Below are positions 22,404 through 45,789 of a stretch of DNA of 64,000 bases, piece by piece (position 1 is the stretch's first letter; every line of letters starts with the position of its first letter). The notes beneath the pieces are model-generated. The model did no database searches. It was given only the letters and a program-made list of their open reading frames with translations, and was not told the DNA's origin. The stretch spans positions 434,001 through 498,000 of the forward strand of contig LSRY02000005.1 of the NCBI GenBank assembly GCA_001643675.2, in the 5' to 3' direction. This DNA is from Monocercomonoides exilis PA203. Taxonomy: Eukaryota; Protista; Preaxostyla. Position numbers and translations under genes: made by a program.

Positions 22404-25400
22404 ATGTTGAAGATTGTGCTTATCTGCTTATTTGAGCACATAATTGGATCATACATAAATACAAATTCAGAAAATATTGATACCATTGTTCAACCGAAAG
22501 ATGAACCGATGAAAGAACAACAATATTCGAAATGCACATTATCGACTTTCCTGCAGAACTTCGAAAACTTTTCTCAATCAGATTTGATGAAGAAAATGAA
22601 GAATATAAAAGATAATTGTGAAAATAAGAAATTGATAAAAGAGAAAACTTTCATTCATGGATGCTTCCAAGAAAAGAACGCATCGATAGGATTAAGAGCG
22701 ATGAATCTTTGCCAGTCAAAAAGAAACAGTTTATTTCTTGTTGATTCACTCTCATGTGCAAGAATCGAAGATTGCCAAATTTTCATTGAAAAAAGCCAAA
22801 CGAAGTGGATTGTGGAGAGTTTTGGAGGAAGAACTGTGCTTTCAAATGTTTCGCTTGCTCCTGAGAAATCAAAGTCTTTTGTTCCCCTCATTCAGCGTGT
22901 CGGGAGAACAAAAAACTGTTTTGAAAGCTTTTCCTCTTTGGAATTGAATTTCTGCCGTTTCTCCTCATTCTGCGTTGAAGGAACCCAACCATTTGTTGGA
23001 AGCTCTGATGCACAGGGTGTGCTTGTGAGTGGATGTGCATTCAAGAATGTTTCGCATTCAAATGTTGAACAAAATGTTTGTCCACAAAGCATGAAAAGAA
23101 ACATGCCTGGAGGAGAATACTTGGTGACAAACAGCCAGTTTTCTTCTGTGGACAATGCATATTATGGAAGCATATTTGACGGACTGACGATGCAGAGCGG
23201 AATGTTTGGGGTTTTCAACAGCTCATTTGAGAAAAGCACAAAAACAGTCATAACAACAAGATCTACGAAAACAGAAGGAGACACAGAATTTATCGATTGC
23301 ATTTTCAAAGATTTGTCTGGTGTTAATGGTGGCGCAATTGATCACATTTCAAGTGGATCGGCAACAATTATTCGTTGTGATTTTGTGGTATGTTTATTCT
23401 TTTCATATATTTTGTAGAATTTCTTTTATCATCATTTTCGCCTTTTGTAACATTGAATAAACACTTATAGAGATGTTGGAGCTTTGTTAATGATGGAGCA
23501 ATGCGGTTATGCCGAGGAACTCATAATGCTACAAACTGCACATTTTCTTTTTGTTGGTCAAACGGATTCACAGGTGGAGCAACCTTGATCGAAGGAACGG
23601 TGGGGATATATGTTGGATTGAACTTTTCTTCCTGTTGGGATGTTTATGGAGGAAATTGTGTTCACTTCAGAAACAGTCAGTCGTCACTTTTTGAATTATG
23701 TTGTTTTGTAAACGGTACAACAACAGGACATGCCGGAAGAGGTGCTTTGTTGGATTTCGGTACAGTCGTCGCAACAATTTCAAATTGTCTTTTCAAAAAT
23801 AACACAGTTCTAAATGGAAATGGGGGAGGATTTTCATGCGCAATTAGCGAAAATAATTATGCGTCAGAATTTGCATTGTCGTTCTGTTTGTTTGACAACA
23901 ATACTGCGACTGAAGGACACGATTTCTATGCTTCATCCCAATATGCGAGTGTGATAAATTCCGATTGCTTTGTGGGGTGCCGTTCGCTTTCATCGAATTT
24001 GACAAGTCGAAGAGTAGTGATTGAAGGAGGATCAGCGAGTGATGACTGGATTCCATTGTTTGTTGGAAAAGTGAATGCAAACAGTGGAAATGGAACAGAT
24101 GAGTGGATATGTGGCACAGCTGACAGGCCATGCAAAACATTGAACCATTCGCTGTGGATGTCTGATGTGAGGAGAGAAATGCAAGAGTTTGTACTTGGAG
24201 AAGGCGTATATGGGGACACTGAGCTGGCGGTGAATGCAATGGGGATGAAGTTTGAAGGCAGTGGGGCAAGTCTAACGAGCATGGAGCCAAGAGCTGAGGG
24301 AGGTGCTGGGATGAAGATCACAAGTGGAAAGCTGATTGTTGAAAAGATATGCCTGGTTCACAATTCTGGATTGTGGAAAGGATCGCATCTGCTCAAGATT
24401 GAAGGAAGGGCAGGAGTGGCAGAGCTTCGAGATGCAGTGTTGAGGAGTGAAAGAAATGCAGAAGGGGATGAGCAAGCGGAAGTGTTTGAGAAGGGCGTCG
24501 TCGAGATTGGCGATGGAGAGTTGATATGCAACAATGTTTCAATGAAATGGATGAAGAGCAAACTGGAGCTGGTGAGAATTGGTGCAGCTGGAACTGCAAG
24601 GATTGAAGCGAGCACATTTTTGGAGATTGAACGAAGTGAAGGAGATGGGAGTGTGTTTTGTGGGGTTGTGGAAGATGGAAAGGAAATGGAGCTGAACGGT
24701 ATTTCATTTGAAGGTTGCAAGTGTCTGAGCGGGAGCGGTGGTGCATTGTGGTTGGAGATGAAGATGGGAAGCAAGGTGGGGATTGGGAACACGACAAACT
24801 CTGATGTGAAGACGATGTTTAAATCGTGCAGTGCAAGAGGATCAGAAACAAGAGGGAATGGGGGAGGAGGATATGGAGGAGGAGTATATTTATATGTCTG
24901 CGAGGGGATGAGAGACTTTGTGGTGAAAAATGTTGGATTTTCGAATTGTGAGGCGAGAGCTGGGAAGAACATGTTTGTGAGTGCAGATGATTTGCAGAAG
25001 GTGATAAACACAACAACAATTGGATTTCAGCCGAATATGGATGTGTATGATGAGCTGAGTGGGTTTGAGAGGAGCACCGCAAATGAAAAGCTTGCGATCG
25101 CTCTTGTGGTGTATTTAAGAGAAGTGAGTGTGCCAACGATTGTGGGAAGCGAAGAAGGGGTGCATGATTTCAGCAGATGTGGGAGTGAAATGTTTGCATG
25201 CCGGACAATCAAAGGAGCGGTTGATGCAGTTGGATCAGCAGAAGAGCATAGAATTCGGATGAGAGAAGGATACAAGCTCGATGGCGAGGCAGTTATCGAA
25301 GGTGGTCATTTTGTGTTTGACACAGAGAATGAGTTGGGTGAAATCGTTGTTGGGACAGATACTGAAAAGCAACAGGATGCACTTCTCATGCTTTCAGCAG

Positions 25401-28400
25401 ATACACAAATTATGAAGATGACGCTGGTTCTGAAGGAGTCACTCTGTGGAAGAGAGGCGTTTGTTGATGTGATGGACAAAACGCTTTCAATGGAGAATAA
25501 CAAAATGAAGATGATGGAAGGGGTGACTGCTGTTGATTATGAGTATGTTCGAGTGACTGGAGGGAAACTGGTGATGAGGAATTGCGAGATCGTGGAGGGA
25601 AAGGATGTGATCTTTGGTGGAAATGGGATGCTATCAGTGAAAGGAGATGGAGAGTTGGAGATGGATGGCGTTCTATGCAAGGGTGTTGGATCAACAGGTG
25701 TTGATGGGATTGTGGTGGTATCATCGAGTGGAAAGAGCCATATTCACGATTGTGAGTTTGAGGGAAAGGAAGGATGCGAAAGTGGATTTGGGAAATGGAG
25801 AGGAAGCTGGAGCGTGGAGATGGAGAATGTGAGTGTTGCTGGGATGAAGCGAAGAACAGGGGATGGGGGATGCTTTGCTTTTGGAGGAGGAAATGGGATA
25901 AAGATGAAAGGGAGGAATTGCACAATGAGTGGATGCTCTGTGAGTGAAGAAGAGAGCAGCGGAGGTGGGATAAAGGTGGAGCTTGGCGTTGCATCAGAGT
26001 TTAAATTGGATGAATGGAAAGTGAATGGATGTTCTGCACAAGGAAGAGGAGGAGGGATATTTCTTTATGGATGTGCAGGATCGAAGAACGACTATGCGCT
26101 GAATGATATTGAACTTGGAGGGAACAGTGCGGCAGAAGGGAAGGATGTTTTTGTGGAGTGTGACGATCTGGTTGTGGGAGTTGTGAAGGAGAAATTTGTG
26201 GATATCAGAGGGAGAGAAGGGGAGAGCGTCGAGATGGAAGGGATTGACAGAGGATATTTCAAAGAAAGAGCTGTCTCATTGGATCTGTTTCTGAAGGAAT
26301 ATGTGGGAGACGTGGTGGATGTGAGCAGGACTGGTGTTGATGTTATTGGATGTGGGAGCGATGCGTATCCGTGCAAGACACTTTTGAGAGGATACAAGAA
26401 TGCAAAGCAATGGGAAGGGAAGAAGACTCTGAAGGTGAGTGGAGCTGTTGAGATCGAAGACAAGTTCGATGTGAGCACGCATGAAATAGTGAAGAATGAA
26501 GGAGCGGAAAGTGCGAGACTGACAGTGAAATCGGTGATTGAAGGAGAAGAAGGCAGCTATGTTCTTGGAAACACAGCAAGCATGCTGTTGAGAGGGATGG
26601 AGATAGGGCTGCCAGTCGAGTTTGTGCATGAAATAGATGTTGTAATTCTGTCAAGATCAACAGCAGGAGACGAAGAAGAGGCTGTTGTGGAGATTGAGAA
26701 ATGCACATTTGTGGGAGATGGGACTGGGGTGAGGGAATATGCAATAATGGTTGCAGAGGGTGGAGTTGTGAGGATGAGTGAATGTGAGATATCAATGATG
26801 GATATGACAGAGACAGGATTTGCCTTTCAGAGCAGTGTTGTGGTTGATGGATGCACATTTTCAGAATGCAGAAGAGCAGTTTCAGGAGAAGGAGGAGTGA
26901 TGAGGGTGGTGATTGGGAATGGAGAAGAGATGAAGATGAACAACACAAAGATGAAAACATGCAGATGCGATGGAAAGGGAGGGAAAGGAGGGTTTTTGTG
27001 GATGGACTGCCGGGGAAACGAGGCAGAGAAGCCGTTCATATTTGGTGAGGGATGCGAGATGGAAGGGAATGAAGCAGCTGTTGGAAGAAACATGTTCATA
27101 TTTGCATCGAAGCTGAACAGTTGTGTGAGTGTTAATTCATTTATGTTTGATGTGGGGAACTGGAGCAATGATAGAAATGGATTTGTGGGGAATGATAGTG
27201 TGTTCACTGATACTGATTTGTTGCGCTTTGTTATTCTGTTCAAGGGCAGAACTGTGCATGTCGCAGAAGACGGATATGATGTGATGAGATGTGGGAGCAT
27301 TGAAGATCCATGCATGAGCTTGTGGCAAGGGCTGATGCATGTTGAGGATTGTGAAGAAGAGAGAATGATCGAGATTATGGAGAATACAAGGATGGATGAC
27401 AGACTTGATGTGTCTGGAATAAAGATAGAGGCACATGGAGGAACATTGATTGAGGGGGATGCGAAGGCAACAATTGTTGTTGAAGTGAAGCAGAGGATGG
27501 AAGGTGTGGGACTGGTGAACAGCAAGAATGCGGGATTTGAAGGGATCCGATTTGAAGTTGTGAAGAATGAAGAGTGCTTGAAAACAGCAATAATAGCAAA
27601 CAATGAAGGAGTTCTGTCACTCACAAGATGTGCATTGAGCATTGAAGAGAATGAATTCGTTGGAGAGATTGTTTTTGTCCACCTGATTAAAGGAGAGCTG
27701 AAGGGAAAGGGAATTGAGATGGAAAGTGAAAGTGCGTGCAATGGAATGTTTATTGTTGAGAGCGGGTGCAGATGCATTGTGGAAGAACTGAAAGTGGAAG
27801 GATGCAAAGTGAAAAGTGGGGCATTGATATGTGTGAGAGTTGGGATGGAAGCAGATGAAAGAAAAGGGAATATTGACGATCAAGAGGCAGGGATTGGGAT
27901 TGCGAACTCGAGCATTGGGTGGGTGGATGGAGAAGGGAGTGATGCGGTTGTGGTGAAGAGCGAGGGAGAGGTGAGTGTTGGGGCAGAGGTGAATGGAACG
28001 AAAGTGGAGGGGTGCAAATGTGGAAGAAGCACAAAAGGAGGAGGGATGTGCTGGCAGATGAGCGCTGGGGGCTGGCTCCGTGTGAGTGAATGCAGCGTGG
28101 TGCAGTGTGGATGCTCTGGGATCAGTGGGCGTGGAGGAGGAGTGTATGTTGGGGCAGAGGTTGATGGGGTGTTGGACTTTGTGTTTGAGGGAGACAAGTT
28201 CGAAGGGAACACGGCATATATTGGGAGGCACATTTTTGTTGCTTGCCACAACATCTCTTCACAGATCAACGAAACACAATTTGTGATGGATTTGAGAGGC
28301 ATTTCTGGGCAGGCACACATGATCTCAGGATCAGACGCAACAGATCACAGGGATGATACAGACTTGATGCCATTCATCACGATATATCAGTCATCGACGA

Positions 28401-31366
28401 TCTTTGTGAGCTCTGGAGGAGCAAAAGGCGGGGAGAACAACAGACAATGTGGGAAAGAAGACAAGTGCTGTGAAACGCTGGGATATGGGCTGGCACACAT
28501 TGTGCACGAGTATGGAACGCGAGTTGTGGTGGATGAAGCAAGCGAAGTGGAAACAGAGATCAAGCTGGAGAATCTCACACTGCTGGCAAAGGGAAGCAGG
28601 GCAACAGTGGGGATGAGCAGATTGGTGAGGAAAGAGAAGGGTTGTGTTGTGGAGTGCAAGGGGAATGTGAGTGTGGAGAGAATCAGCTTTGAGATTCCAG
28701 AAGTTCTTCCAACAGAACACGAGCAGATATTTGGTGTGGAGGAGGGAACACTTTCAATGAGTGAATGTTGGGTGAAGCCAGCTGAAGGAGGCAATGTGTG
28801 CAGATTGCCAACGCTGATGCATGGAGAAAGATCATCAGTCACAATAACTGGATTAATTGTTTCACAGTTTGCATGTACTTCGCTTGTTGAATTTGTTGAG
28901 TGTGAGGTGAAGTTATCAGAAGTTGTTGTGGAGCAAGGTGAGAGCAGGAATGGGTTGGTTTTCTTGAGGAATGGAGAGATGAATGTGAAGGAACTTGATG
29001 TGGTGGATGTGAAAATTGAGAATGGGCCTGCTGTCAATATGTTGAGAGAGGGTGGAAATGAGAATAATGGAATGTTAGCAGATGAGAAGAGGAGGAAGCA
29101 GCTGAGAGGTGATGAGAAAAGAATGGATGTGATATTATCGAAGTTCAGCAACATCAGCCGAACAAGTGAAGGAGCATGTGGAGTGGAATGTGAAGACGGA
29201 GAAGGGAAGGTCATGCTGCAAAACTGTTCGTTTGCAGAATGTGAGTCAAGAAGCACTCGGGGGATTGAAGCCTCTTTTTGCAAGTGCACGAGTTTAATAT
29301 TGGACTCAAGCATGTTTGTGGGTGCTCTTGAGGAAAATGAACAAATGAAAGAAAAAGAGGGATTTGAGAGAGATGAAATATGCAGATGGAATGGCTCTGT
29401 TGTGGATGTTGAAGAGAGCGTTGTGAGCATGAAAGATGTGTCAGTTTCAAACTCATCATTGGGTGGGCTGTCGGTGAAGGGAGGAGAGGTGAAGATTGTC
29501 TCAGGCCTCTTTGCATTCAATAGCTTGACAATTCGAGGCTTTCCATCAGCAAGAAGAAACATAATATGCTCTGATTCTGCTCAGCTGAATATTGTGAGTC
29601 TGAAGGGAGGAGATGGAGTGAAGGATAATTCGTCATTGTGGATTCTGAATGATGGATGCATCTTGAAGGGGATCGTTGAGGAGCGAGCATCACCGCTGTT
29701 TATCCCAATTCTTCGATCTGCCACATCAGAACAGAACGAAGAGCTTTTGAACGTTGTGTTCAGAGGAGCACTTCTTCTGCCATGCAATCTTTCTTTTCGG
29801 ATGACTTCCTCCATTGGAGATGTTGAGCAGGTCGAGACTCATGAAATACCCGACTCGGGCTTTGTGAGCGAAGAGGAAGTTAATGTGGCAATTGAATCTG
29901 GAATTGTGAGAACAGCAGACGCAAATGCAGAGGTGAGCGTGTGCATTCTGTTTGGAAATACAGAATCTCTTTCATCAACAGATTCATTCATTTTGAAGAA
30001 CAAAAGTGAAACTGAACCAAAAAAAGATGTAAAAATTGTTGAAGGAGGAAAAGAAGGAAAAATCTCATGGGCTTTGATTGTTTGCATTGTGATTGTGGTG
30101 GTATTGTTAATAGTATCCATAGTATTCATTGTTCGATGGAGGAAGGTGAAGAATGAAGCAGAAGATCTGAGAGAGATTGTGAATGATAACATCAGAAAAG
30201 ATCCGAAGCTGATTGAGATGGTGACGATGGAGATGTCTCCTGAGGAGCAGTGGAGGAGAGCAGAGAGGGAGGCTGAGAAGAAGAATGATGAGAGGATAAA
30301 GAAGAGAATACATGATACGAATATGGAACATTCAGAGTCATCAGAGCATCTTCTATCTGAGAGTGGTTCAACTGAATACATTCTGGGGAGAGACTCAGAC
30401 AAGATCCCAGAATGGGCACTGGAAAAGGTTGAAGAAGAAGAGATTCGAAAGAGAACTCCTTCACCATCCATCTCATCCACTTCAACGACTGATTCAGATT
30501 CCACTTTTATCCGACCAGAGAGCATGTGTCCAACCACCTCATCGATGTCGAATCTGGTGGATGCGATGGCATGCTCATCACCTCATGAAAAATTGATTGT
30601 GGACTTGAGAGATTCGCTGTTCATGCTGCTTCATGGGAGGAACAAGACAAAGGAAATGCCGATTGGCTCACTGAAAGAAAGAGAACAAACAGCTTCCCAA
30701 ATTATGTTCTGGGTGGCCAATCTTGCGCTCCACTCATTTGATGAAATGGAAAATCCTCTTTCTTCTCTTTCCAACCTCAGTCCGCACATTGTTTTATTCT
30801 CTGAGCATATGGTAATCTGCATTGTGATGCACTCAGACTTCTTGTCTGATGATGACTCGGATTCATCCTCCATCTCATCATCAACAGTTATCACTTCTGC
30901 CAGTGATGATGATGATGACTCACTTCCCTCATCAGCATTTGAGGATGAGGATAGCTTCAAAAAAGAGTGTTTGAGGTGGAAGGCACCAGAACTGCTGATG
31001 AACAAGAAGCTGGGAGCGACAAAGAAGTCAGTTGGCTTTTCGATTGGGATGATGCTGTGGGAGTGCTTGACACTGCAGATCCCGTTTGGAGAGTATCCAG
31101 CAGAGGTGGCAGGGCAGAAGATTGTGAATGGCGAAAAGCCAAAGCCAGAGGCTGTTGAAAACTCGTCTTTGAGCAACGCGGTGAGATGCACAATAGTCCA
31201 GCAGCCAAACGATCGGCCGGCACTCACTGATTTGAAGAAGGAGTTCATCCAGCACTTTCCAGAAGGAGCAATGGTCATGACCATTGCTGATGCAGTTGAT
31301 TACCAGATGCCATCTGAGTGCAACTCGCAGATCCCTGATTCAAGCAGCTCGCTCATATCATTGTGA
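22404..31366 (+). CDS. Giant single-pass receptor-like protein with a repetitive pectin-lyase/Pmp-like beta-helix ectodomain and a pseudokinase domain (~2959 aa)
   Basis: The 353-aa and 2621-aa ORFs join in frame via intron 23388-23470 (GTATGT..ATAG). Features: signal peptide MLKIVLICLF, repeated CG-x4-5-C-x-[TS] and GG[AG][IVL]/FxxC/GxxxF motifs, TM ISWALIVCIVIVVVLLIVSIVFIV, then RWKAPE, FSIGMMLWE, IPF and DRP. Confidence 0.88.
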
Positions 31367-32613
31367 GTGTGCGAATGGCTTCAACTGCATCTTCTTCAAA
31401 AAGCACAAATGGCATTTGCCAATGAAAGAGACTCAAATGAGGTTGCAAGATCTTTTCTGAACAGAAAACGGATCCTCTGAAAACGGTAATATTTCGATGC
31501 TTGTGGAAGTCTCGAGCATGCAATCCATTGATCTTTCGGAAAGATCGAGCGGAGTTCAAGCAGAGCTTTGTTAAAGCTGTGCGAATGCTGTTTGAACCGA
31601 ATGGGAGACATATTATTTCAGTTTGTGGAAATTCATTTCAAGCCACTTTCTGAATAACGCTTGCTCCATTTTTTTTTTGCTTTTGAGTTTATTATCAGGT
31701 TTTGTTCTTGGTTGAGTGTGTGTATTTGATTATGTGATTCAATTCTTTTCGTTTTCTTCATTTTTTCTTATTTATTTATTTATTTATTTTTGTTTTTAAT
31801 GAGAATAATGAATGGTTTTCTGACCAATCAAAAACGTGCTTTTGAGAAAAGTGCTTCCAAGAGTTGTTTTTGCTGTTTTGTCTTTCCTGGTTGCTTGTTT
31901 GCATGATTTTGGTTCAAAAGAAGAAACAAACAACAATCACTCAAAGCATCAAACGAAGAGCACATGGCTAACGATTGAAAAACTGAGCACAAAAAGTTTG
32001 GATATGAATGAAGGAGTTGAATAAACTTTGTGCAACTTTTTCAGTCTCTCTTTTCAACAGCGCGAGAGTATTTTGTTCCAAAAATAATTGAATAAAAACA
32101 ATCTTCCTTCCCCTTGCGTTAGCCTTTCTATCTTCAATTCAATTGCAAACAATTGTTTTTAAATGAAAAATAATGTATCCAAGCCAGAAAGTCAAGTTCA
32201 ACTTCAATCTGTCAAGCCATTGACAAACAAAAGACGAACCAACAATTTCAATTGCATTATTGCCATTTCAGATTTTGAGTATCGTTGAAAATCATTGCCT
32301 TTCGTTCGAATCCTTCAGCTGCTCTTTGGTGTTCAAAACCCTCAGGAAAGCAAAAACAATTATTCATTGATGCTCTTTTCCATTTCACTTTCTTTTGTTA
32401 ATGAGTCTCCTCCGCAGTTATTTTCTCCTTCATTCACTCATCCCAAAAATCTCATTCCACAATTGGATCGATTTATTTTATTTCATCTTTGAACATGCAC
32501 GAAATAGAAATAGACCCTTTTCTTTTTTCATGATGGCAATCGCTCGCATTTCCGAAGCAAAGTGGTAAAAAATACCACAAAACTTATCTGTTTTTCTTCA
32601 TTCGTCTTCTGTT

Positions 32614-35400
32614 TCATTTGATTTTGGCTTCCTTCAACAGCCACTTCACCTGCTTGCCAAGTCCCGCCTTGCTCAGCTCTGCATCCTTCACGCTGCTCAC
32701 CGCAATTCCCAAACTCTTTCCCGCTTCCTCTTCGCAAAAGCCTGCCCCTCCATAATCATATGCTTCTTGCCCCTTTCCGCTCTCACTCCTCAGTGACTCT
32801 GAACGCGATATATGGTGGCTCCTGTATCCATGTCGATGATGCCTGTGATGAGAATGGTCATTATTCATTGCGTGTTGCGCATCCCATTCTTCAATCAATT
32901 TGCTCAGTGAAGAGTTTTTATCTCTTCTCAGGAAGCTATTGTCACAATACCCATGAGAGCAATCATGATGTCGCCTGTGATGCCTGTGTTCATGCTTTGT
33001 GGTTGTCTTCAACGAACTCACCATCGAGCTTGCATCTGAACTGTCTCTGCAAAGCCTTGCTTCGCTATGCTCCTTCTCTTCCCCTTTGGGTTCATCATTT
33101 AATTCTTCATCTGCGTTTCCTCCTCCTTTTCTCTCTGATTTTCTTTTCTCCACACAATTAATACGAGCAGATTTCTCGCTAAATCCTCTTTTCTCAAATC
33201 CTTTTCCCAATGCTAGTCTCTTTTCTTTGCCATCTTCATCGCCTTCATCATCATCATCATCAAATATCAAGCTCTTTTTTTCCTTTATGCGCAAATTCTC
33301 TTTCCGCTTTCCCCTTGCTTTTTCCTGACTCAAAACATCCTTCGTTATTTCTTCTCCTCCATCCTTTTTCTTCAAAATATTATCATAATCTTCTTTTTTA
33401 GCATCTTCAATATATCTTCTCTGCAATATGTGCTCTTTTTCCTCTTTTTTGTTTACTGTGCTTCCTCTTCTTTTCATCTTTTGCGCTTCAAACAGATCTT
33501 GGTCCTCTTCTTCAGATGCATCTCCAATCTCAAATATCTCGTCTCTCCCAATACTAATTTTCTTGCCTATTCCCGTTTCCCATCTCTCTTCCTCTCTCCT
33601 TTCAGCCTCGTAAATTCTTGGCTCTTTTCTTTTTCCTCCTCCTCTTTCGTCCACTTCTTCTTCTTTAATTCCTGTTTTAGTCTTCTGTTTCCTTTCTTTT
33701 CTATCCTCAGCAGCATCATCAATGTGCCACTCATAAATCCCTGACCCCCGCTTCAAAGTGTCGTATGCTTTGTCGCTTTCTTCTGAGCTATCTCCTTTTC
33801 CCTCAGCAAAATCCTCCATCTTGCTCTCCCCGCATCCCCCAATCATCGCAATGTCTGCCAAAGAGACTGTAATAGGACTTGATGCACCTTCTCTCTTGAG
33901 CACAATCTGCTCTGAAAGAAGCGAAGAATATGGAAAGTCGGAAGAAGGCAAATCGATCCTGCTGATATCAGCTTCCAAAGATGTTTCGCCTGAAGACAAA
34001 GCAGTCTCTGCCTTCATTTCTGTATTTTGCTTCGAAGATAATAAAGGTTCGTTCATTAGAGACGATGCCACTGAAGAGGATTCCCTTAGGCCTGATGAAG
34101 ACAGAGAAGTGGTTTCGCTGTGCGACATTTTCATCTGATTCGGTGAATCATGCAATGCATTTGAGTTCGCCAGCAGAGATCTGTCAGTCTGTTCAGCTGA
34201 TAGCCCTTGAGTTGCATTGGCACTGTGCTCTGCCTTTTCTTCCTTCATTCCTCCACCCAAAAAGCCCAACCGAAATCGTTTTCTCGGGGGCTGCATGTTG
34301 CTCATTCGATGGAGTTTTTCATCAGCGCTTGCAGATGCACGAGCAACAATTTCTGCGCTGATGTGTGCCGCATGCAATTTCAGTTCATCTTCTTTGGCAG
34401 CTTCTCCAAGTCCGAAAACGCTTCCCAAAAAACCTTTTCCTTTCTCCCCTTCGTTGGCCCCTGATTCTTTTCTGTTCACCTTCTGCTGCCCTTTCTTGCT
34501 CTCAGCATGCCCCACATTCACTTTTTCTTTTGATGTAAGTTTTTCAGTCATCGGCAAAAACAAGTCATCCTCGTCAATTGCCCCATGTACTCCATATACT
34601 GTGCTAGATGACTGCACGGCTTCGCCGTCTTCTATCTCGCGACTCGTTCCGTCATACACCTCCGAAAACAGTTTGTCAAACTCTTCGTCCCATCCCTCTG
34701 ATTCCTCCCAAGCTCCTTCGTCTTCGCTGCTCACTTCCCTTTCCTCTATAATTTGCGTGCATTTGTCTGCTGTTTTATCGAGACCGACTAAAGCAATCTC
34801 CATCGACAAAATACAATTCATAAACAAATTCTTCTTGTTTTATAATCCCAATTGAATCAAATTTATAATTTTCCCAATTTTTCTGGAATTCAAATTGCCC
34901 TAAGATTCTGTGCTGTTTGGCCTCCTTACTCCTCCGTGAAGCAAGAAAAGCGTAAAACAATTATATTAAAATATAAAAATGGTCCTGATCCGCTCATAAT
35001 TATTCTCTCCTGCCTCTTCCAGACATCCATCATCCGTCCCAGACCTTCAGCCATTCGTGCCTCTCTGATTGTGAAGTGCTGAGAAGCAGCCAGGCAGAAG
35101 TGCTCTTTGTGAAGTGCTTCCAAAAACAAACTCAACAACCAATTTCTCAAAAGAGGCAGGTGAAAATTTGAAGAACTGATTGGGATGGGGAAAAACAACA
35201 AATAAATAAATAAATAAACTGCACAATAACGCAATCTCAAAGGCAACCACGAATTCTTGCTGTGATGTGAGCCAGTCGCATTCCATTTTGTTCTTCTTCA
35301 TCGCTCGCAATCTCCCCTTTATCCTTTTCCTCTCCAAAATTCGTTTTTCCAACCATTCCTTCTCCCAAAATTCTGGCATTCGGCTGAAGCAGACGTTGCT
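32614..35400 (-). CDS. Hypothetical Glu/Lys-rich protein: a 737-aa terminal exon plus probable upstream exons
   Basis: Long ORF 32614-34827 with a TTT-proximal non-ATG start implies splicing. Coding-like pieces lie at ~35400-35251 and 35078-34990. Whether it is separate from the BCD1-like gene is unresolved. Confidence 0.55.
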
Positions 35401-35449
35401 TTGCGGATGTCCATCAATAGCTCCAGAAACACTTTCCCAGGCAATATGC

Positions 35450-36340
35450 TCATTGTGGTGGCTGTGGCATTGCAGGTGTGTGCATCGTGGCTGCAAATGA
35501 ATCATAATAATCTGCTCCAAAAAAAGAACAGAAAAAGTGAACACGAAAAATGAAAAAAGAAAAACAAAGAATTCTGAAACCTTGGGGCAAATAAGCTCCG
35601 AAAGAAAATGGCTGAAATGGAACTTGGGGAGCATAGCAAAAAGGAGAATAATATCCAGCCATCCCCTGCGGCACTGGGGCACTCTCTGCTGGCTGAAGCA
35701 CAGGCACCACTTTCTCACCCTTTTGCTCCCCAGAAGCTTGCTCGTAGCTGTTTTCTGCAAGGTGTCGCTGCTTCTGCGGTCGAACTTCTTCCATTCCATC
35801 ATCCTTGCTCTTGTCTTTCCCATCCCGTTTTTCTTGCGCAATAAATGCCTGGAACAGCGCACCTTTCGATGATTGCTGTGTCCCTTCCCTTTTCACACTG
35901 CTTTCTTTCATCGACGCTTCAACAGCCTCCAGCTCGCTCATCATCGCTTCATACAAAATCGGCTTTGCCCCGAACCGTGGCATTGCCGGCACCTCCTCTT
36001 CACCACGTTCCCCAATTTTTATTTCCTTGCGCGCCTGCTGCATCTTCCTTACCAGGTTCTCGGGAGGCACAAACGAAGGCCTTTTCGCTTCCTTTTCTTT
36101 TCGCTTCGCCCTCTCCACCTCCAGCGCCATCGACTCCAGGAAGTGCAGGTCCGAAACCATCGTTTGCACATTCATCTCTGACAGACGCACAAACTGCTGC
36201 GGCTGCCTCTTCCCCGTGCACCCGCTCTGTTCTTTGTGTTTCTTCACACACTCCACACAGCATGTCCGCACCCCGCACTCCGGGCACTTGTACTTCCACT
36301 CCTGCTTTTTGCATATTTCGCACATGCCTTCGTCTGCCAT
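35450..36340 (-). CDS. BCD1: BCD1/ZNHIT6-like box C/D snoRNP assembly factor (zf-HIT)
   Basis: CEICKKQEWKYKCPECGVRTCCVECVKKHKEQSGCTGKR followed by FVRLSEM..MVSDLHFLE, the characteristic BCD1 N-terminus. A probable intron starts at ~35580; the 3' end is uncertain. Confidence 0.82.
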   Translation of the reverse strand: MADEGMCEICKKQEWKYKCPECGVRTCCVECVKKHKEQSGCTGKRQPQQFVRLSEMNVQTMVSDLHFLESMALEVERAKRKEKEAKRPSFVPPENLVRKMQQARKEIKIGERGEEEVPAMPRFGAKPILYEAMMSELEAVEASMKESSVKREGTQQSSKGALFQAFIAQEKRDGKDKSKDDGMEEVRPQKQRHLAENSYEQASGEQKGEKVVPVLQPAESAPVPQGMAGYYSPFCYAPQVPFQPFSFGAYLPQGFRILCFSFFIFRVHFFCSFFGADYYDSFAATMHTPAMPQPPQ

Positions 36341-36865
36341 CTGCTGGTTGCTGCGCTAAGAGTGGGCTTTTACAAAAAAATTCTCTCAGGACAAAATAAC
36401 CTATGGGCCAAGAACAAAAGAAAAAACATCCACCACAAATACCTCTATCCATCAGAAACTTTTATCTATCTTCAAGCATGTGAGCAGATTAAGCACTTGC
36501 CAGAATTCGTTGAAGTCGCTCAATCGGAAAGAGATTGGAAAAAAAGAGATTTTCATTTTTTCAACTTGAAACAGAAGTTTTGAAAGCTTCGTCTGACAGC
36601 TTCAATGCATCAACTTAAAATTACCCATTTTAAATAAACATGCAAAAATATAGGGGGAAAAAAATAATGAGCAGGGAGAAGTGAAGCAGTGGCAAACACA
36701 ATAATAATGGAGAATGCTTCAAAACCTCAACAGAAAACACATACAACCAAAAATCTAACAAAAAGCTTCACGAAAAACGCAAACATTAAAGCAATATTAC
36801 AACACAAATAAATCGAAAAATGAAATTGAAAGTGAACGGAAAAGAGAAAAAATGAATGCAACCGT

Positions 36866-39740
36866 CTAGCAAATCGACTCTCCCCTCTCTTCCTTCTCCT
36901 TCATCCTCTTCACTGTGCACCGCAGCTGCTCTCTGTCTTTCTGCGAAAGAGCCCCGCTGCGCATGTGGGCCTTCCAGGAGGGCGGCAGCACGAGGCGGTC
37001 GAAGGGCACAGGCTGCGCCAGGCGCTTGGCATCGAAGGTGCGCAGCAGATAGATGGCCAGCTGCTGGTCGGCTGTGCGGATGTGGCTCATGATCCACATC
37101 GAGCAGAACGCCACAACATCCGACAGCGGCGCCTCGCCTGCCTCGATGCCTGCCACAAACGCCAGCGCCGAGCCCAGCAGCTCCACGTGTGCCTGGCAGT
37201 GTCTGTTCTGCACCTGCGCCGGATAGTGCGTGGCCTCCATCATCTGCTCCTCGTCTGCAAAGTGGATCATCGCCACTGCCAGCAGCTTGTCCCCTGCCTG
37301 CGCCACCTCTGCCAGCGGGGCGTGCTGCGCAACCAGCGCCACAATTGCTGCCAGCGTGTTGACCAGCACGTGGTGTGCCTCGTCCATCCGCCCCACCTGC
37401 GTCACCAGCTCTTCGCTCCACACAATCTGCTCCTCCTCCGCAGAGGTCGCAAGATGTTCAATATACATCGTTTTGCTTTGAACGCCACGGAGTATTCGCG
37501 GAAGAGGAGAAAAGCACAGCGCAAACACCATCAGCATCACTATCAGAAATATAATGAACAGCACAATGACAAGCGAAGGAATAACATTCACAACTCCCTT
37601 GATGTACTTCTCCCGCAGGAGCTCTGCCATTTTAATCCCATCTCCAAGATCAAATTTTGAGGCTGTTGTGATGAACTGAAAAGACGGATTGGTCGGCACA
37701 AGCTCCTCGTCCTTCGCGTTTGTGAGCGTCTGCACGTTGTCAATGAAAAGCAGAAGAAGAGCATTCAGCCCATAGAACTCGTCTGTCATGCCTGCAATCC
37801 GACCTTCTTTGCACAGCGCTTCATTCAGCATGAGGCACTTCACTTTGCTGTTCAGCAAGGTTTCCACATCGTGGTTGACCCCCTGCGACCTCGACGCTGT
37901 CATCGAATCGATCGCATCATCACCAGACGGAGGAGCAGAATCCGAGCCTACAAGCAAAATGCTGTTGAGTGATATCAGCAGCGAGTTCAGCCCTTTCAGC
38001 ACAGAAGCCACCTTCTGCTGCGACAAGAGAAAGGATGTGTTGAAGAGAACAGGAGAAGTTATCTGGAGAGATGCATGTGTTGCCTCCTCAAGAGAAGAAG
38101 ACGTTGAAAGACGTTTCGATGAGCGCTTACTCATCTCCCTCAATCTTTCCTGCCACTCTTTTCCATTTGAGCGCTCATACTCAAACACAGCTGCACGCTC
38201 TTCCCCTACCGTTGAGTTGCCCACAAGCATTGCTGCAAATCCTGCAATTTGTAAAGTCAGCACACTTCGCTGCCCTTCCATCGCCAGCTTTCCCACCTCA
38301 TCGCTGATAAGCATACTCTCAACAATCACTCCTATTTTAAATGAAATTGCATTTCTTTTCATTTTCCATCGTCTTTTGTTTCTCCTCTTCATCCTTTTTG
38401 GTTGTTTTTCCTTTTGTTTGTTCATAAACAGGCTTCAGAAGCCATTTTCTGTGTGAATTAGCTTTTGATAGAAAAGCACCCAAAAAGGCAAAGAGAACAG
38501 GCAAAACAGCACAAATGATCCAAGAAAGAGCAGAAAGCGAATAATAAACAGAAGATGAAGAAGACGAAGAAGGATTGGAGGACAAAGAGAAAGAAGAGGA
38601 AGAGGAAGAGGAAGAGAATGTGTCAGATGCATCAGAATAAGTTGATGGAAAATGAAATTTTGATTTAATAGAAGATGGCTCATATTTCAGTTGCTCTTTT
38701 CTGACAATTTCAGAAGCTGCAGTTTCAGGCAGAGAAACTGCGTCCAGCTGCACCAGCAGATTCTGAATGAAGCCGATCGCAAAACTTGCCCAACCAGCAC
38801 CTGACGCTGCAGACAGCATGGCGCAGTAGATTGTGTTCGGCCGGATGGAGAAAAAGGGCTGCTTCAGTGCCACAAGCAGCGCAAGCAGCAGGAACGCCAG
38901 GCCGATCCCGAGCGATGTGAAGACAGGGCTCAGAACCTGCAGCAGTGTGGCTGCCATCACTACAGCAGAAATGGCACTCTCGATAAACGCCAGAAGCCCC
39001 GTCCGCCGCAAAGTGAAGTCGCTTTTTTCAGAGAAAGTGGGCTGGAAATGGAAGTAGAAGACAAGCACCCAAAACGCATTCAGCACAAACACAAACACAG
39101 CACAAGTTATTCCAAGATCAAGCCCCGAGCCGCCTTCGCAGAACGACAAGTTCGACTTGATTCTCATGGATATGCTGGACGAGTCAGCAATCGAAGAATT
39201 GATGAAGCACGTCAGCGGAGAAAGAAGGAATATGATGTTGGGGATTCTCAGCACTCGACTTGATAAAAGCAGAAGAAATGATGCTGTGTTCCGCAAAAAC
39301 TGGTTCATCCTTTTTTGTGCTGTTGAGGTGAGACATAATGCAAACATTAGCAAAATAGGGATGATGCACAAAATCGAAGATATTATGAAAAACGTAATTA
39401 ACGCAGTTGATGACAAAAATCGGATCGAAGGATCGAGATATCGTCTAAAAAAGATGGGAAAAATGCCGAATAAAATAAGGTTAACACATATTTAACATCA
39501 TTTCTTTCAGATATTGCTGAGGGCAAACCCCAATGTCTTCATGACTTCGGGAAATCCCATTGAAAAAATATCCACTCGCTTGAACCCCAAAAAGCAAAGT
39601 TGGAACCCATTGATAATGCACATCAAAGTGAAAGAATTACGTGTGAAGGCTTTCCATTACTGAGCCAAAAAATGACAAAACAATAAAAATTCTTTTTCAA
39701 ATAGACAAAAAAACAAACTGGATATCCAGTCTTCATAAAT
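36866..39740 (-). CDS. Multi-pass membrane protein (TmcB-like architecture) with a C-terminal hemerythrin domain; possibly disrupted
   Basis: The 359-aa ORF has about 7 hydrophobic segments (KQPFFSIRPN motif). It overlaps in a different frame with a 519-aa ORF that carries a TM helix followed by the hemerythrin motifs VWSEEL, MDEAH, HFADEE, HCQAH and HIRTAD. The junction near 38340-38430 and the 5' exons are not cleanly spliceable by eye. Confidence 0.75.
37045..37430 (-). other. Hemerythrin (bacteriohemerythrin-type) di-iron domain
   Basis: All seven canonical ligands are present in order (H; HxxxE; HxxxH; HxxxxD), together with the N-terminal W and the YP motif. Confidence 0.92.
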
Positions 39741-40317
39741 GCAAAAAGCCTATTTTTATAAAGCAATAATTCAGTGAAATTCAATAATCATCAATTATAT
39801 GGCGATACATTCGCGTTGAACTTGAAAAGTGCGCGGAAACGAGATTGTCTCCAAATCCGCTACTCAAATGTTTTGCAAGTATCCGTCGCAGCGGAAACAT
39901 ATCTTGTGCAAGTGCGCTTCCTCTATGACGTTGTTATAGGCCTTTTAAGACAAAAATTGCAATTGTTTGATCAACAATAAATATTATAAAATTATTTTTG
40001 AGATTTTTTTAAAAATTATGAAGTTTATTATAATTAGTTGTCAGCTTTTTGAATGAAATTCATTAAATGAATACAAAAGAAAAAATGCTGTTTATCAAGA
40101 ATTATTGTCTTGTCGGCAAATTTGTTTTTAAACTTGATAATTTTTGTTAATTTCGTTTGGTACATGAAATTTTTTCGATAAGCATCTGCAAATGTTAAAA
40201 TTTGAGCAATGATACAAGTATTCATGATAATACATTTTGTTATCTGCATGTTCATTACATCATAATTATATGTGAATATTTTCCAGACATATCTATTACA
40301 GTAGAAAGATCAAAGAA

Positions 40318-41953
40318 ATGTCTAATTCAATTGAGATAAAATTGAGTCCAGGAGGTAGTGAGAATAACGCATCCTCTTCACAAGTGATAACGATGGGTAC
40401 ATATTATTCTGCGATTTTCTTCCTTTAAAGCGAAAATTTTGACTTTATAATTTATTTAGAAGGAGGAGATAATCTGATGGATGGTTGCGCCTGCATTGGA
40501 CAAAATGAGAACCTTGAAGATGTTGGCCAACTGCAGGCTGAACAATGCACGGAAAAATATGTGTGCTTGTTTCTCGATTTATTCGAATGTGAATTTTTGT
40601 TTTTGATGTTGGCTCGTGGGCATTTTTGAATTGTTTGCTTTCATTGCGATATTTTGCTATATTTTATTGCATCAACAGATGGATGGTACACAGTCGTTGA
40701 TTGCAAATGAGGAAATTTCAAGCGCGATAGAGCTGAAAGAACTTACCGAACAAACAAATGATGGAAGAGGTATTCAAAATGGTGCAGCTCCTACAAAAAG
40801 GATTGCATCATTGGACATGTTGAAATCGTTTGCAGCTCTTGGTGTTGTGCTTACTCATTCTGGACTCAGACAAAGATATCAGTACAAGCTTTTCAGCACA
40901 AACAAAAAACTTTCGTACTGGATTTTAGCAAATTTATATTGTGCTTTTGGATACCCCGGAACTCACTTGTTCATGATGGTGACAGGGATCATCATGCTGT
41001 CACCGAAAAGGCTGAATGACAGCGCAACAAGCACTATGAAATATATCATTCAAAGAATGGTGCAATACACGTTGTGGATGATCCCGTACAACTTCAAGCT
41101 GTTCAAAGCTGCAATGAAGTTGGCAACACCCTTCAAGCGGATTCGTCAAATAGTGAACATCTTTTTTGTGAATTCTGGGACGCTTTGGTATTTGCAAATT
41201 GCTCTAAGAATTCTAATGATTGTACCGTTTGTGAGGCAGGCAGTGAAATCGACAAGTAGGAAAATTCTTGAAATTACTATTTTGTCAATATTTGTGTCGC
41301 ATCATCTGCTGCACACTTTTCTGGTTGGGATGCAAATAGGGGTGTGGGCAGATGCGTTTGTGCCGATGTTTTTGTCGTTTCTGCTTGGTTATTACTGCTG
41401 GACGGTGATGGAGTATCAGCGCAATCCATCAGCAGAACACCCAAACTGGGTGGAAGAGCCGGGATACCTCCCAATTCTGGGGAGAGTGAACTGGCAGAGC
41501 AAAGTGACAGCGTTGGTGTGCTTTGGAGTGTTTATATTTTCTGCGCTATGCAACTGGGGGCTGGTTGTGCTGACTGGGCATTATGCACAGAACGCTGAGT
41601 TTGGGAAATTTTTCGAATATTATGAAGTATTCGAAACTTTGGCATTTGTGGGATTTTCTTGTGGAATTTTTGCTTTGACGTGCAAATGGAAGCCCACAAC
41701 CAGATTTGAGAAGTGTGTGATGTGGTACTTCAGTTCGACAGGATCGTGCACGTTGGGAATTTATTTGATGAACGAGTTTGCGATCTTCAGGTTTGTGGCA
41801 GATTATCTGTTTCCGAAAGTGCTGAAGAAGTCTTATTACGATATGAACCCGTTGTGGTTCACTCCTCTGCTTTGCGTGAGCGTGTATTTGACAACATGGA
41901 TTGTGACTGCGCTTTGGCAGAAAATACCGCTGCTGAAAAGGCTGGTGATGTAA
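40318..41953 (+). CDS. Acyltransferase-3 family (OafA/WecH-like) multi-pass O-acyltransferase with a spliced N-terminal extension
   Basis: RIASLDMLKSFAALGVVLTH, LFMMVTG, LWYL and TLGIYL motifs with about 10 TM segments. Exons 40318-40396, 40460-40560 and 40679-41953 join in frame with GT-AG introns. Confidence 0.88.
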
Positions 41954-42519
41954 GATGCTGCTTTTGAGAAAACAGCATTTCACAGAAAATCTTTTCATAT
42001 GAATGCACATTGTGTGCATATATTCGATCTATTCTATTATCGATTGATGCTTCATTTTGCATTTTTATTTTTTATTTTTATTTTTATTTTATTTTTTTTT
42101 TTTTGATTGAAAGCAAAATGATAGATTTTTCGTTATTTTTTATTGCTCCTGTTTTCTTAATGTTTGTCTTCATTCTGTTTTATTTTGATTTCGAGGTTTT
42201 AAGTTAAGAGGAGCAATGTTACAAAAGTTAATTCTTCAAATCAATTTATGTAACGTTTTATAATTAATATATGGCTGATCCTTTTTGAAATCAAACTTTC
42301 GTTCGAGTTTTGATCAATATTTTGATCTCAATGGGATTTTTGCCAAAATTTGTTTTTGCAACAGCAATAACATTAACAATAAGTGTTCACTATTTCACCT
42401 CATTTGGGACAAAATTTTTTGTTTTATGAATTTTGTTCCACACAGTTCTTTCAAAGATTTTTTTCGATTTTTTATGTTTTTATATATAATATTGAAAGAT
42501 AATGTTAGAATTAAGCCTG

Positions 42520-42790
42520 GGTGACGTACTGACTTTTGACGTAAACCTTTCGATTCCTGACTGACGTGACAAATATTTTAACGTCAGTAAAAAATTTTTG
42601 TGAAATTTAATTTTGATTTTGAAATAAAAAACATTAAAAATAAAGAATCCATTTTTTTATTAACTTGTTCAATTTTTTTTTTAAATTTCATTATTTTCTC
42701 AAATCATTAATACCATAACATGATTTCACTGACGAAATGGTCAAAATCGGAATTTTGAAACTTCTTTGACGTCAGTGACGTCACGTCAGG
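42520..42790. promoter_or_regulatory. Subterminal TGACGT/ACGTCA motif cluster (putative transposase-binding sites)
   Basis: Repeated TGACG(T)/ACGTCA in AT-rich DNA at 42521-42590 and 42730-42790, mirrored at 50694-50727. Confidence 0.7.
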
Positions 42791-42799
42791 TTACTCAAA

Positions 42800-45789
42800 A
42801 TGTTAGAGTTGGAAGAAGACATGGAAAATGAAAACTTACCAAAGGAATTACAAGAATGTTTAAGAAACGTTTTAATTGTTTGCTCAAATCTCACAACAAT
42901 TCTCACAATATGGTGAACATTTTATTTGTTAGAAAGATATTTACGAAAAGACAAAAAAGAAAATGCATGACACAGGATGTCAATTTGTGAAATTACAAAA
43001 ACAGTGCGAAACGAAATACGGACCAGGTTTATGAACTTTTTTTCGATTTTTTTATTTTTAAATTTCTTATTGTTTTTCTTTGTGAAAAGTGTATGATCAT
43101 CCTCGAATAAAAAATGAATTTCTTTCTCGAATTTCATTTGAAGTTATCGGAGAATCATTATGGATATCTTACACTCTCGTTGATGTAAATGGAACACCAA
43201 AAAAAGATTGCCATAAGTATTATTTGTGCCCTATTTCGAAAGAAGGATTTCCCTGCGGTGTATCAGGTCGAAGAAGTTATTCTGTGGTTGTTAATCATAA
43301 ATGTGAACTATTGAAACACAAAAATATTGCTCTATTCAAAAAAGCATATGATCCCATATCAATTTGCAAAGATCCAATGTCTCTTTCAATGTCAGATGGC
43401 CCAACAAGTGTTTCAGAATTACAAAAGCAATTCATTTCCTTGATTTGCCGATGCAATTCTTCGTTTTTGGCATCATCATCAAAAGAAATGAATTCGTTTA
43501 TTTTTTCGTTGATCAAAGCTGGACAAAGTAACCCTTCGCTATCATCAACATTAATTTTCCCATATTTAACACGCAAAAAAATCGCCCACATGGTTCTCAA
43601 AGAAAAATCCAGAGTGGTGAAGGAAAAGGAGTCAACAATTAGAAACAATGGAGTGAGCATTATGTTGGATGGAGCATCAGTGGCGAATCGAAAGATCATT
43701 GTTGTTACAGTATCAAAATTGTCATTTGACAGCAAACCATTATTTTGGGGATTATATCCACCATGCGGAACTACGAAAGAGTTCAATATCCTTGTTAACA
43801 ATCAAATATATGAATTCAGTCAATATAACACAATTGTGAGAAGTTTTTGTACAGATGGGTTTTCTTCTCAAATCAGAGCAATAGAGAATTTCACAAGTCA
43901 GGAAAGCAATGCAGATTCAGTTGAAGAAAAGCATCAGAGATTTATTCCTTTTCATATTTACTGCTGTAATCACTTGACAAATTTGGTTATCACAAATTTA
44001 TTCACAAAAGTTCCATTTCTTTGTGATCTCAAATTAAAAATGTTAAATTTTTCTCAAAAAGCCCATACTCTGCCATTGAAAAACCTTCTGAAGAAGCGTG
44101 CACCGACTTTTGTCTCAACAAGATGGAATTCATTGTTCGAAATAGCTTCGTTCATCAGGAAAAAGAATCAAATCATTCAAAAGGAAAATTTATTAGACAC
44201 TGATAGCCTTGTAGATATCATCAAAGCAGAAGTGTTCTTATTCCCTTTTCATTTGCTTCATATAAATTTCGAAAATGATAGTATCAAGTTAAGTCAAGTT
44301 TTCCCAATTTTATTAAGATCTTTTGAGTTTTTTTTCTATATTTTGAAGCAGGTTCAGTTCAAAGAAGAAAAATGGAGAAACTCTATTGCGAACTCGCTTA
44401 TATTGATGTATAATTATTTTTTTGTGGGAACGCGCGGTGAATATATAGCGCTTTCGTATGCTCTGATCCCAATTGGCATTCAGTTGGTTCGAAAACAATG
44501 CTTTCCTCTCAGAAACTTTTCAACACCATCTTTCTTTGTGAAAGAAGCTGAAACCTCTAGTCAATCCTCCTCAACAAAATCTTCAGACTTCACACACATT
44601 GCTTCATCATTATTTCATCCTTTGCCTTATCCTGTTGACTTTAATGCAAATGAGTTTTTTTTATTTTTTGTTTAAATTTCTTTAACTTTTGTTTTTGATA
44701 TTGATTGACCATTTTTTGAAACATAGGATGGATTATGAACCCCAGTCCCAAGCTGCATTTCAAGATAAATCAAAAAGTCAATCAGGTTTGAAACTATTCA
44801 TATTAATTTATTTGCTGTATTTAATGCTTATGCACATTTATATGTCTCTTGAAGAAAAAAATGAATTGAATGGCATTCTTTTGTTGATACAGCAACTAGA
44901 AGAAACTGATCAAGAAACGTATGGGAAGAGAAACGAAAAGAAACTTGTCGTTGGAGAAGAGGATGATGAAAGCGATGAATTTGGATTATTAGAAGCGGAA
45001 GAAAATTCAGTTGACGATATGTACGATTTTTTATTTGAACAAAAAAACCCAAGTCAAACTCAAATCGGGAAAGATAATGAAATATTCACAACGTCTGTCA
45101 TTTCTTCAACTTCAAGCAATTCCAACTCTTCAACACATTCATTTGAAAATCTTAATTGTTATTCTTCGGCTAGTGTTTGTTCACAGGAAACAATGAATAA
45201 AACTCAAGAGGAACAGACGGATGTTGATAGAGTCCTTGAAGATAATCAGATGGATGAAACGATATGTTTGGAAGATGACATTCACTGTCACTATCATTGT
45301 TCTTTTGATGGACATCAGTCAGAATTAGATGAAGAAATAGATTTTGATATTGAAGAATTATTTTCGACTGGCAAATTACCTATTATTACAGAATTCAATG
45401 AAGAAAAAGAAACACAAAGCATGAAACAGATAGAGAACACGTTGTTTGTTGATTGGTTTCCTAGGCTTGACGCATATTTTTCGAAATATGCAAAAAAAGT
45501 TTTAGGAGACATGGAAAAGGAATACTCAGAAGGTTGCAAGCTGCTGTTTGAAAGGCAGATGAGATCAAAGCCGGATGATTTATATGAAAATAACCCAGAA
45601 ATTTATTACCAAGTGCTGGCAGCATATGGAAATATTCAAACCGTTTATTCTGGATTGTGCCTTTCGTTAATTGTTTCCCTCTGTAGTGAAGCTAGCTGTG
45701 AACGAGTTATTTCCAGAATAAAAAACATCATCGGTGATCAAAGATATTCTTTTAACATGCAAACACTTGAAGCAATCCTTCACATTTGA
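42800..45789 (+). CDS. hAT transposase, spliced
   Basis: Motifs VSIMLDG (D1), FCTDG (D2), CCNHLTNL (CxxH), TRWNS and SEASCERVISRIKNIIGDQRYSFNMQTLEAIL (E, C-terminal dimerisation region). The two ORFs join via an intron at ~44654-44726; another probable intron starts at ~44786. The 5' exons (42800-43025) are tentative. Confidence 0.9.

Follow-up and report, generated by a model that had tools for sequence, protein, structure and literature searches.

Introduction

Fusions of hemerythrin to sensor proteins are well known in bacteria (PMC4919030, PMC9388753), and in one of them, the chemoreceptor DcrH, the N-terminal loop of the hemerythrin is redox-dependent (PMC9388753). Among protists, hemerythrins with proposed roles in O2 stress or sensing have been reported in Monocercomonoides exilis, Mastigamoeba and Naegleria (PMC6759080, PMC8136499, PMC9928731); the M. 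exilis genome paper gives hemerythrin only as an oxygen-stress enzyme (PMC6759080). The TmcB protein acts in cAMP signalling in Dictyostelium (PMC12750705, PMC8516963), and a 2021 paper found tmcB homologs in Carpediemonas and in none of the other sampled metamonads (PMC8516963). For the first-pass annotation of the locus described here, a joining of the two would lose its novelty if the architecture were already characterised. No paper pairing hemerythrin with TmcB was found in the literature searched, where coverage is thin for subscription papers. Bacterial hemerythrin fusions and TmcB are known separately; the hemerythrin-TmcB fusion family is real and an unpublished candidate for oxygen/redox sensing.

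Gene structure of the locus

The window, a stretch of 64,000 nucleotides from the genome of M. exilis, an oxymonad without mitochondria, carries at 36866-39416 what was first read as a single multi-pass membrane protein with a terminal hemerythrin. The locus is a broken segmental duplicate of M. exilis MONOS_7061 (2719 aa, hereafter the parent) and very probably codes for no working receptor. On its minus strand the span contains one ORF of 359 aa (38337-39416) and another of 519 aa (36866-38425), which do not share a frame, and a TAA at 38337-38339 ends the upstream, membrane-half ORF. It also falls short of the gene, whose start lies further upstream, at an ATG at 39900, with three more exons. 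The exons were read singly by reference, and lengths given for the gene are arithmetic. The features are as follows.

31000..42300 (no strand): segmental duplication of the gene with its neighbours, at least 11 kb (genome DNA search)
39809..39900 (-): coding exon 1, beginning with the first in-frame ATG (39900); RNA contigs show the intron joint, and applied to the parent this exon arithmetic yields 2719 aa
39750..39808 (-): intron 1, 59 nt, GT..AG (RNA joint in runs X1-X3)
39719..39749 (-): exon 2, 31 nt (RNA contigs and sequence reading)
39660..39718 (-): intron 2, 59 nt, GT..AG (RNA joints)
39529..39659 (-): exon 3 (RNA contigs and sequence reading)
39657..39659 (-): premature stop TAA at codon 42, where the parent has CAA (Gln) (sequence comparison with the parent)
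39445..39528 (-): intron 3, 84 nt, GT..AG (RNA joint in X1 and X3)
38352..39444 (-): N-terminal multi-TM block, forming the 5′ portion of exon 4; 95% identity to the parent, match to public MONOS_6371 (379 aa)
38330..38351 (-): filler of 22 nt at the junction left by the deletion, standing in for 5,355 nt of parent sequence; causes a frameshift, unspliced in RNA contigs
38312..38314 (-): ATG gained (parent: GTG); P0001, 482 aa in the public annotation, begins here
37574..38290 (-): outer loop, predicted to form a four-helix bundle like those of PilJ/McpN/NarQ (model of the corresponding parent region)
37517..37573 (-): last transmembrane helix (hydropathy 3.6)
37451..37507 (-): helical linker from the TM to the hemerythrin (parent model and coordinates)
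37034..37420 (-): hemerythrin domain (PF01814, TIGR02481, PDB relatives, ligands)
36866..37033 (-): 55-aa tail and stop codon (ORF reading)

The hemerythrin itself is complete, as the first-pass annotation had it. The domain matched PF01814 with an E-value of 3.9e-8 and 34.3 bits (cut-off 25.3) and TIGR02481 with 70 bits (cut-off 51.75), and it stayed under the cut-off of the narrower NF033749 profile (70 vs 84). Its nearest PDB relatives are the Methylococcus bacteriohemerythrin and DcrH-Hr. All seven Fe ligands (HHEHHHD) are in register in both the window copy and the parent, with minus-strand codon starts in the window at 37375 (H), 37264 (H), 37252 (E), 37201 (H), 37189 (H), 37084 (H) and 37069 (D). 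The helical linker at 37451-37507 and the tail of about 55 aa proposed around the domain were confirmed as well.

The membrane part agreed less well with the first description. Roughly seven N-terminal TM segments had been proposed; hydropathy of the upstream ORF shows six clear hydrophobic segments, and the seventh is a weaker stretch seen by eye. A later TM-loop-TM unit had also been proposed, but the hemerythrin-half ORF has one TM only (37517-37573), most of the first TM of the unit being deleted. The outer loop at 37574..38290 contains two conserved Cys and two N-glycosylation sequons. Weak Pfam matches to Tmemb_9 and DUF6234 were discarded as hydrophobic noise.

Deletion junction and RNA evidence

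The genome DNA search aligned the locus to two blocks of the parent, C47:111093-112838 (95% identity) and 118194-120019 (98%), and the 5,355 nt between them are absent from the window. Both blocks lie within a single open frame of 2650 codons, which together with three small exons amounts to 2719 aa, the length of the public MONOS_7061. What was deleted comprises TPR_TmcB and, near parent residues 1288, 1707 and 2128, three TM helices, two of them whole and one for the most part. The net length change of deletion and filler is not a multiple of three, so that the frame is shifted into the TAA at 38337-38339. The 22-nt filler has no second occurrence anywhere in the genome with up to 2 mismatches. 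It ends like the intron 1 acceptor of its own gene, with an A-rich run and TAG, and this end is unused in the RNA contigs. The compact shape of the apparent receptor and its lone "TM-loop-TM" are thus due to the deletion.

RNA evidence came from contigs (Logan) of four runs (X1-X4) of one 2024 study; such contigs may be mosaics of copies and drop rare isoforms, and a minor spliced form could escape them. They contain three GT-AG introns, all upstream of 36866-39416, and none at the junction, which is read unspliced in X1 (38295-38546, 0 differences), X4 (38166-38503) and X2 (38166-38420). Contigs spliced at intron 3 (X1, X3) bear the window copy's own letters beside the joint, which means that this copy is transcribed and spliced. 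DNA carry-over is unlikely, given zero depth in intergenic bins. The letter of the codon-42 stop was found at an RNA joint in run X3 only, and the parent letter in X1-X3. One contig spans the last TM, linker, hemerythrin and 3′UTR, and the contigs across the hemerythrin have mostly the window copy's letters. Separate loose contig ends at 38397 and 38329 continue into the parent gene.

The TM block and the hemerythrin can therefore not be kept as a single protein, their halves lying in different frames with the junction unspliced in the RNA contigs. No reading frame of the window copy joins the TM region to the hemerythrin, which comes close to what the first-pass annotation itself had named as refuting, namely transcripts that never link the two. 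A cryptic intron, for example one of 148 nt at 38479-38332, could mend the frame and give the compact receptor as first described. Pairs of GT and AG that would keep the frame are present, and the filler resembles a 3′ splice site with its TAG end like the acceptor of intron 1. However, no such joint occurs in the four RNA runs, whose contigs read through both sites, and the upstream stop would persist. Moreover, the four-helix loop would directly follow the last N-terminal TM and would then probably lie on the wrong side of the membrane. We consider such an intron very improbable.

Duplication and age of the breaks

The parent block (G000:C47:105.5-125.5 kb) lies inverted on the same contig, 350 kb apart from the window copy. 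A third, truncated copy (L008) is found at C47:213-219.5 kb; it begins at the hemerythrin linker and has a TAG within the domain. It is publicly annotated as the 176-aa MONOS_13539, seemingly a free-standing hemerythrin but in fact a fragment. The high identity to the parent (95-98%) could suggest a misassembly, or an allelic haplotype of MONOS_7061, as the source of the deletion. Against this, the junction was matched without mismatch in 2024 RNA contigs, the two copies stand apart and inverted on one contig with 2-5% differences across at least 11 kb, and the third copy exists. An assembly error was rejected, since RNA contigs read the junction, and the explanation as a whole is hardly conceivable.

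Other genes and repeats were noted in and around the duplicated block. The HIT zinc-finger gene (PF04438) at 35450-36340 (-) was co-duplicated with the window copy; RNA contigs of 4/4 runs carry non-window letters for it, and the expressed copy may be another one. At 40616-41953 (+), within the duplicated block, lies an Acyltransferase-3 (PF01757) gene with a 445-aa ORF, upstream introns in RNA and several genomic copies. A 2621-aa single-TM protein with a putative degenerate kinase-like tail is encoded at 23501-31366 (+), and sequences related to its 3′ end are numerous in the genome. Adjoining a transposase-like ORF pair, 42270-43000 and 43089-45789 hold short dispersed repeats that occur dozens of times in the genome.

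Between window and parent, pN/pS is 0.19 in the 3′ half and 0.28 in the 5′ half, and the 3′ value is lower than expected under drift since the duplication (P 0.004-0.03). Such low values mean that the breaks are recent or that the halves are still under selection, and judging from sequence comparison the breaks are probably recent. Three substitutions separate the hemerythrin domains of parent and window. In the hemerythrin region, private changes (non-synonymous to synonymous) are 3:1 in the window copy and 0:2 in the parent, which are small numbers. Residues private to the window copy are N at 37360, N at 37207 and M at 36904.

Selection on the halves would fit a gene fission, in which the deletion left two functional genes, one for a multi-TM protein of 379 aa and one for a loop-TM-hemerythrin protein of 482 aa starting from the ATG at 38314 by re-initiation or from its own promoter. 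The public annotation does cut the locus into a 379-aa and a 482-aa gene, and the new ATG lies 23 nt past the stop. The low pN/pS of the 3′ half and the predominance of window letters in hemerythrin RNA contigs also speak for two genes. However, the 482-aa product would have neither a signal sequence nor a first TM to place its loop outside, and its ORF stands behind two stops on apparently one transcript. In addition, the private changes tilt towards non-synonymous, and no comparable short form was seen elsewhere in the family (57 genome matches). Fission is an improbable reading.

With high probability, then, the window copy is a young, processed-looking yet genomic (intron-bearing) duplicate that was broken recently. 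A full receptor is not to be expected from it; translation from a downstream ATG could at best give a TM-only fragment of 379 aa. The compact receptor serves as a warning, being an artefact of reading across a deletion. The short public "hemerythrin" proteins (482 aa; MONOS_13539, 176 aa) come from broken genes and are unsuitable for experiments.

The family of intact hemerythrin-TmcB genes

Profile searches of the M. exilis genome (82.3 Mb, 101 contigs) gave at least 57 hemerythrin matches and 69 TPR_TmcB matches; the latter were obtained with a newer Pfam model and stand against the 2021 absence of tmcB in sampled metamonads other than Carpediemonas (PMC8516963). Paralogues with the fusion that was first suspected in the window are numerous: 52/57 hemerythrin matches share one open frame with an upstream TPR_TmcB, about 1,000-2,800 codons apart. 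Three further matches lie near a TPR_TmcB with the frame interrupted, and only the window copy and the third, TAG-bearing copy have no TPR_TmcB upstream. All 57 matches found are either fused or broken copies; the Pfam search, in which 57 is a lower bound, added no free-standing hemerythrin. A further 14 TPR_TmcB matches in the genome have no hemerythrin match.

In the parent, TPR_TmcB is detected with 32.1 bits (PF25474, cut-off 27), and it is missing from the window copy as part of the deletion. The parent has about 12 TMs, arranged as an N-terminal TM block, TPR_TmcB, two TM-loop-TM units and a C-terminal hemerythrin, and Pfam detected no PAS or cyclase domain in it. For the other paralogues the assessment used loci of 3.4 kb and the lengths of their frames; within the top 30, intact loci have TMs about 50 and about 290 residues ahead of the hemerythrin. 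The initial picture of a TmcB-like scaffold with a bacterial-type di-iron hemerythrin and no catalytic output thus holds for the intact MONOS_7061 and its family and fails for the doubly broken window locus.

Iron ligands vary across the family. Among the top 30 matches, 8 have complete sites (6 intact genes and two broken copies), 5 have lost the second His, 13 have lost both His of the O2-binding iron, and 4 have a changed last His or Asp, the last His being replaced by Asp/Glu in L014, L023 and L024. Most paralogues are thus half-site hemerythrins, in which one or both His of the O2-binding iron are lost; the bridging Glu does not vary, nor do the first two His at the other iron.

Length-limited word-index homologue searches gave no more than the protein itself, which carries no information on the family. 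An exhaustive search with paralogue L001 as query found the same C-terminal module outside M. exilis, in Blattamonas nauphoetae, Streblomastix strix and Paratrimastix pyriformis. Both TPR_TmcB and hemerythrin were detected in Streblomastix and Paratrimastix proteins, and complete seven-ligand sites occur in all four genera (Monocercomonoides, Blattamonas, Streblomastix, Paratrimastix). In a quick unrooted tree of 132 columns, one branch (SH-aLRT 95) separates the fused domains from 47 other hemerythrins. This would fit one fusion before these lineages parted; the tree, being unrooted, shows no donor. Some members (among them P0005 and P0015) run far beyond the hemerythrin position or hold two TPR_TmcB stretches (P0005). 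In the gene model of P0050 (Paratrimastix KAJ4460679.1) a protein kinase domain comes directly after a complete hemerythrin and may be a built-in output.

Predicted structure of the C-terminal region

The last 516 residues of the parent, modelled with an alignment of 52 rows, gave a pLDDT of 89.7; a fold of the window domain from its own sequence alone reached a poor pLDDT of 47 and was set aside. The parent hemerythrin is predicted as a four-helix bundle with an N-terminal Trp loop, with TM-scores (by target) of 0.80-0.85 against DcrH/McHr.

Regarding the outer loop between the last two TMs, the situation was less clear. The loop model matched PilJ, McpN and a NarQ TM-sensor fragment with Z scores of 13.6, 12.3 and 11.5, near the level common for helical bundles, and the nearest named Atlas family was PF13675 at 0.89. 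The sequences gave no support for PilJ/PF13675, with no Pfam match among the 52 members and an hhalign probability of 0.4%, and Foldseek found no match for the two-domain model at E 0.001. The PilJ/McpN/NarQ-like fold is accordingly a borderline lead from modelling. An Arg near the membrane is kept in 43/52 alignment rows and recalls R61 of McpN (PMC6381276). The conserved Cys and sequons would place the loop outside and the hemerythrin in the cytosol together with the TPR. The closest Atlas shape was a parabasalid cluster with PAS domains (TM about 0.42-0.45), a similarity of models which hints that PAS and hemerythrin occupy the same slot in such receptors.

Proposed function of the intact receptors

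By analogy with DcrH, members with complete sites, such as MONOS_7061, may sense O2/redox, a proposal that could as well prove right as wrong. The intact parent would act like the bacterial chemoreceptor without its MCP output. O2 binding or oxidation at the cytosolic di-iron site would shift the N-terminal loop of the hemerythrin, and this loop, which some 20 helical residues link to the last TM, could pass the signal on. The hemerythrin signal would be integrated with that of a ligand at the outer four-helix bundle, and the TPR scaffold would relay the combined signal in trans to a partner that probably belongs to cAMP or kinase signalling. The redox-dependent loop of DcrH (PMC9388753), the fold matches, the parabasalid cluster of similar shape with PAS domains, the Paratrimastix hemerythrin-kinase gene model and the tie of TmcB to cAMP signalling in Dictyostelium (PMC12750705, PMC8516963) speak for such a mechanism.

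For the family as a whole, we tentatively propose, with slightly less than even confidence, a Preaxostyla-wide set (oxymonads and Paratrimastix) of 50+ TmcB-type receptors with an outer chemoreceptor-like four-helix domain and a cytosolic hemerythrin, in which complete sites would sense O2/redox and half-sites a metal or another ligand. Alternatively, the receptors might sense metal/iron status (or NO/nitrite), or the hemerythrin might be mostly structural and no O2 sensor, a plausible reading that we nevertheless lean against. It is consistent with the loss of both His of the O2-binding iron in 13/30 top matches and of one in 5/30 while the ligands of the other iron are invariant, and with an outer domain that resembles nitrate-sensor folds and keeps its membrane-near Arg in 43/52 rows. 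On the other hand, all seven ligands are retained in the parent, in five other intact genes and in members from Blattamonas, Streblomastix and Paratrimastix, and the PilJ likeness has only a borderline score for a helical bundle, with nothing at the sequence level to back it.

If our proposal is true, bacterial hemerythrin chemoreceptors would have a eukaryotic equivalent in these receptors. The family offers a candidate for oxygen sensing in anaerobic, mitochondrion-less eukaryotes. It also recasts the M. exilis hemerythrin, reported as an "oxidative-stress enzyme", as a probable signalling family, because all hemerythrin domains found in the genome belong to TmcB-type receptors. With six intact complete-site genes including MONOS_7061 and a soluble domain of 130 residues, the question is directly testable.

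Comparison with known systems

The hemerythrins reported from protists (PMC6759080, PMC8136499, PMC9928731) differ in that the passages on them mention no membrane/TmcB fusion or family of 50+ genes. The predicted fold of the last outer loop of the parent is like the four-helix sensors PilJ/McpN/NarQ (PDB 8WDF, 6GCV, 5IJI); unlike them, the loop has no Pfam or profile match, and its inserts carry the conserved Cys pair.

With the TmcB/TmcC family (Dictyostelium tiny macrocyst protein B; PF25474) the receptors share TPR_TmcB, present in the parent and in 52/57 hemerythrin genes, the N-terminal TM block and the TM-loop-TM units. They differ in the hemerythrin at the end of the parent and in having no PAS or cyclase, and in the window copy the TPR is lost.

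Desulfovibrio vulgaris DcrH (PDB 2AVK/2AWC) likewise ends in a cytosolic hemerythrin, with five His, Glu and Asp as ligands, that follows a unit of TM, outer domain and TM, and DcrH-Hr is the best structural match of the parent hemerythrin (Z 16.0, rmsd 1.9 over 132 residues). No HAMP or MCP output was matched by Pfam in window or parent, whereas the bacterial matches P0024 and P0041 show MCPsignal. Unlike DcrH, the M. exilis receptors have a eukaryotic multi-TM TmcB scaffold with TPR, a hemerythrin about 20 residues from the TM and 50+ paralogues.
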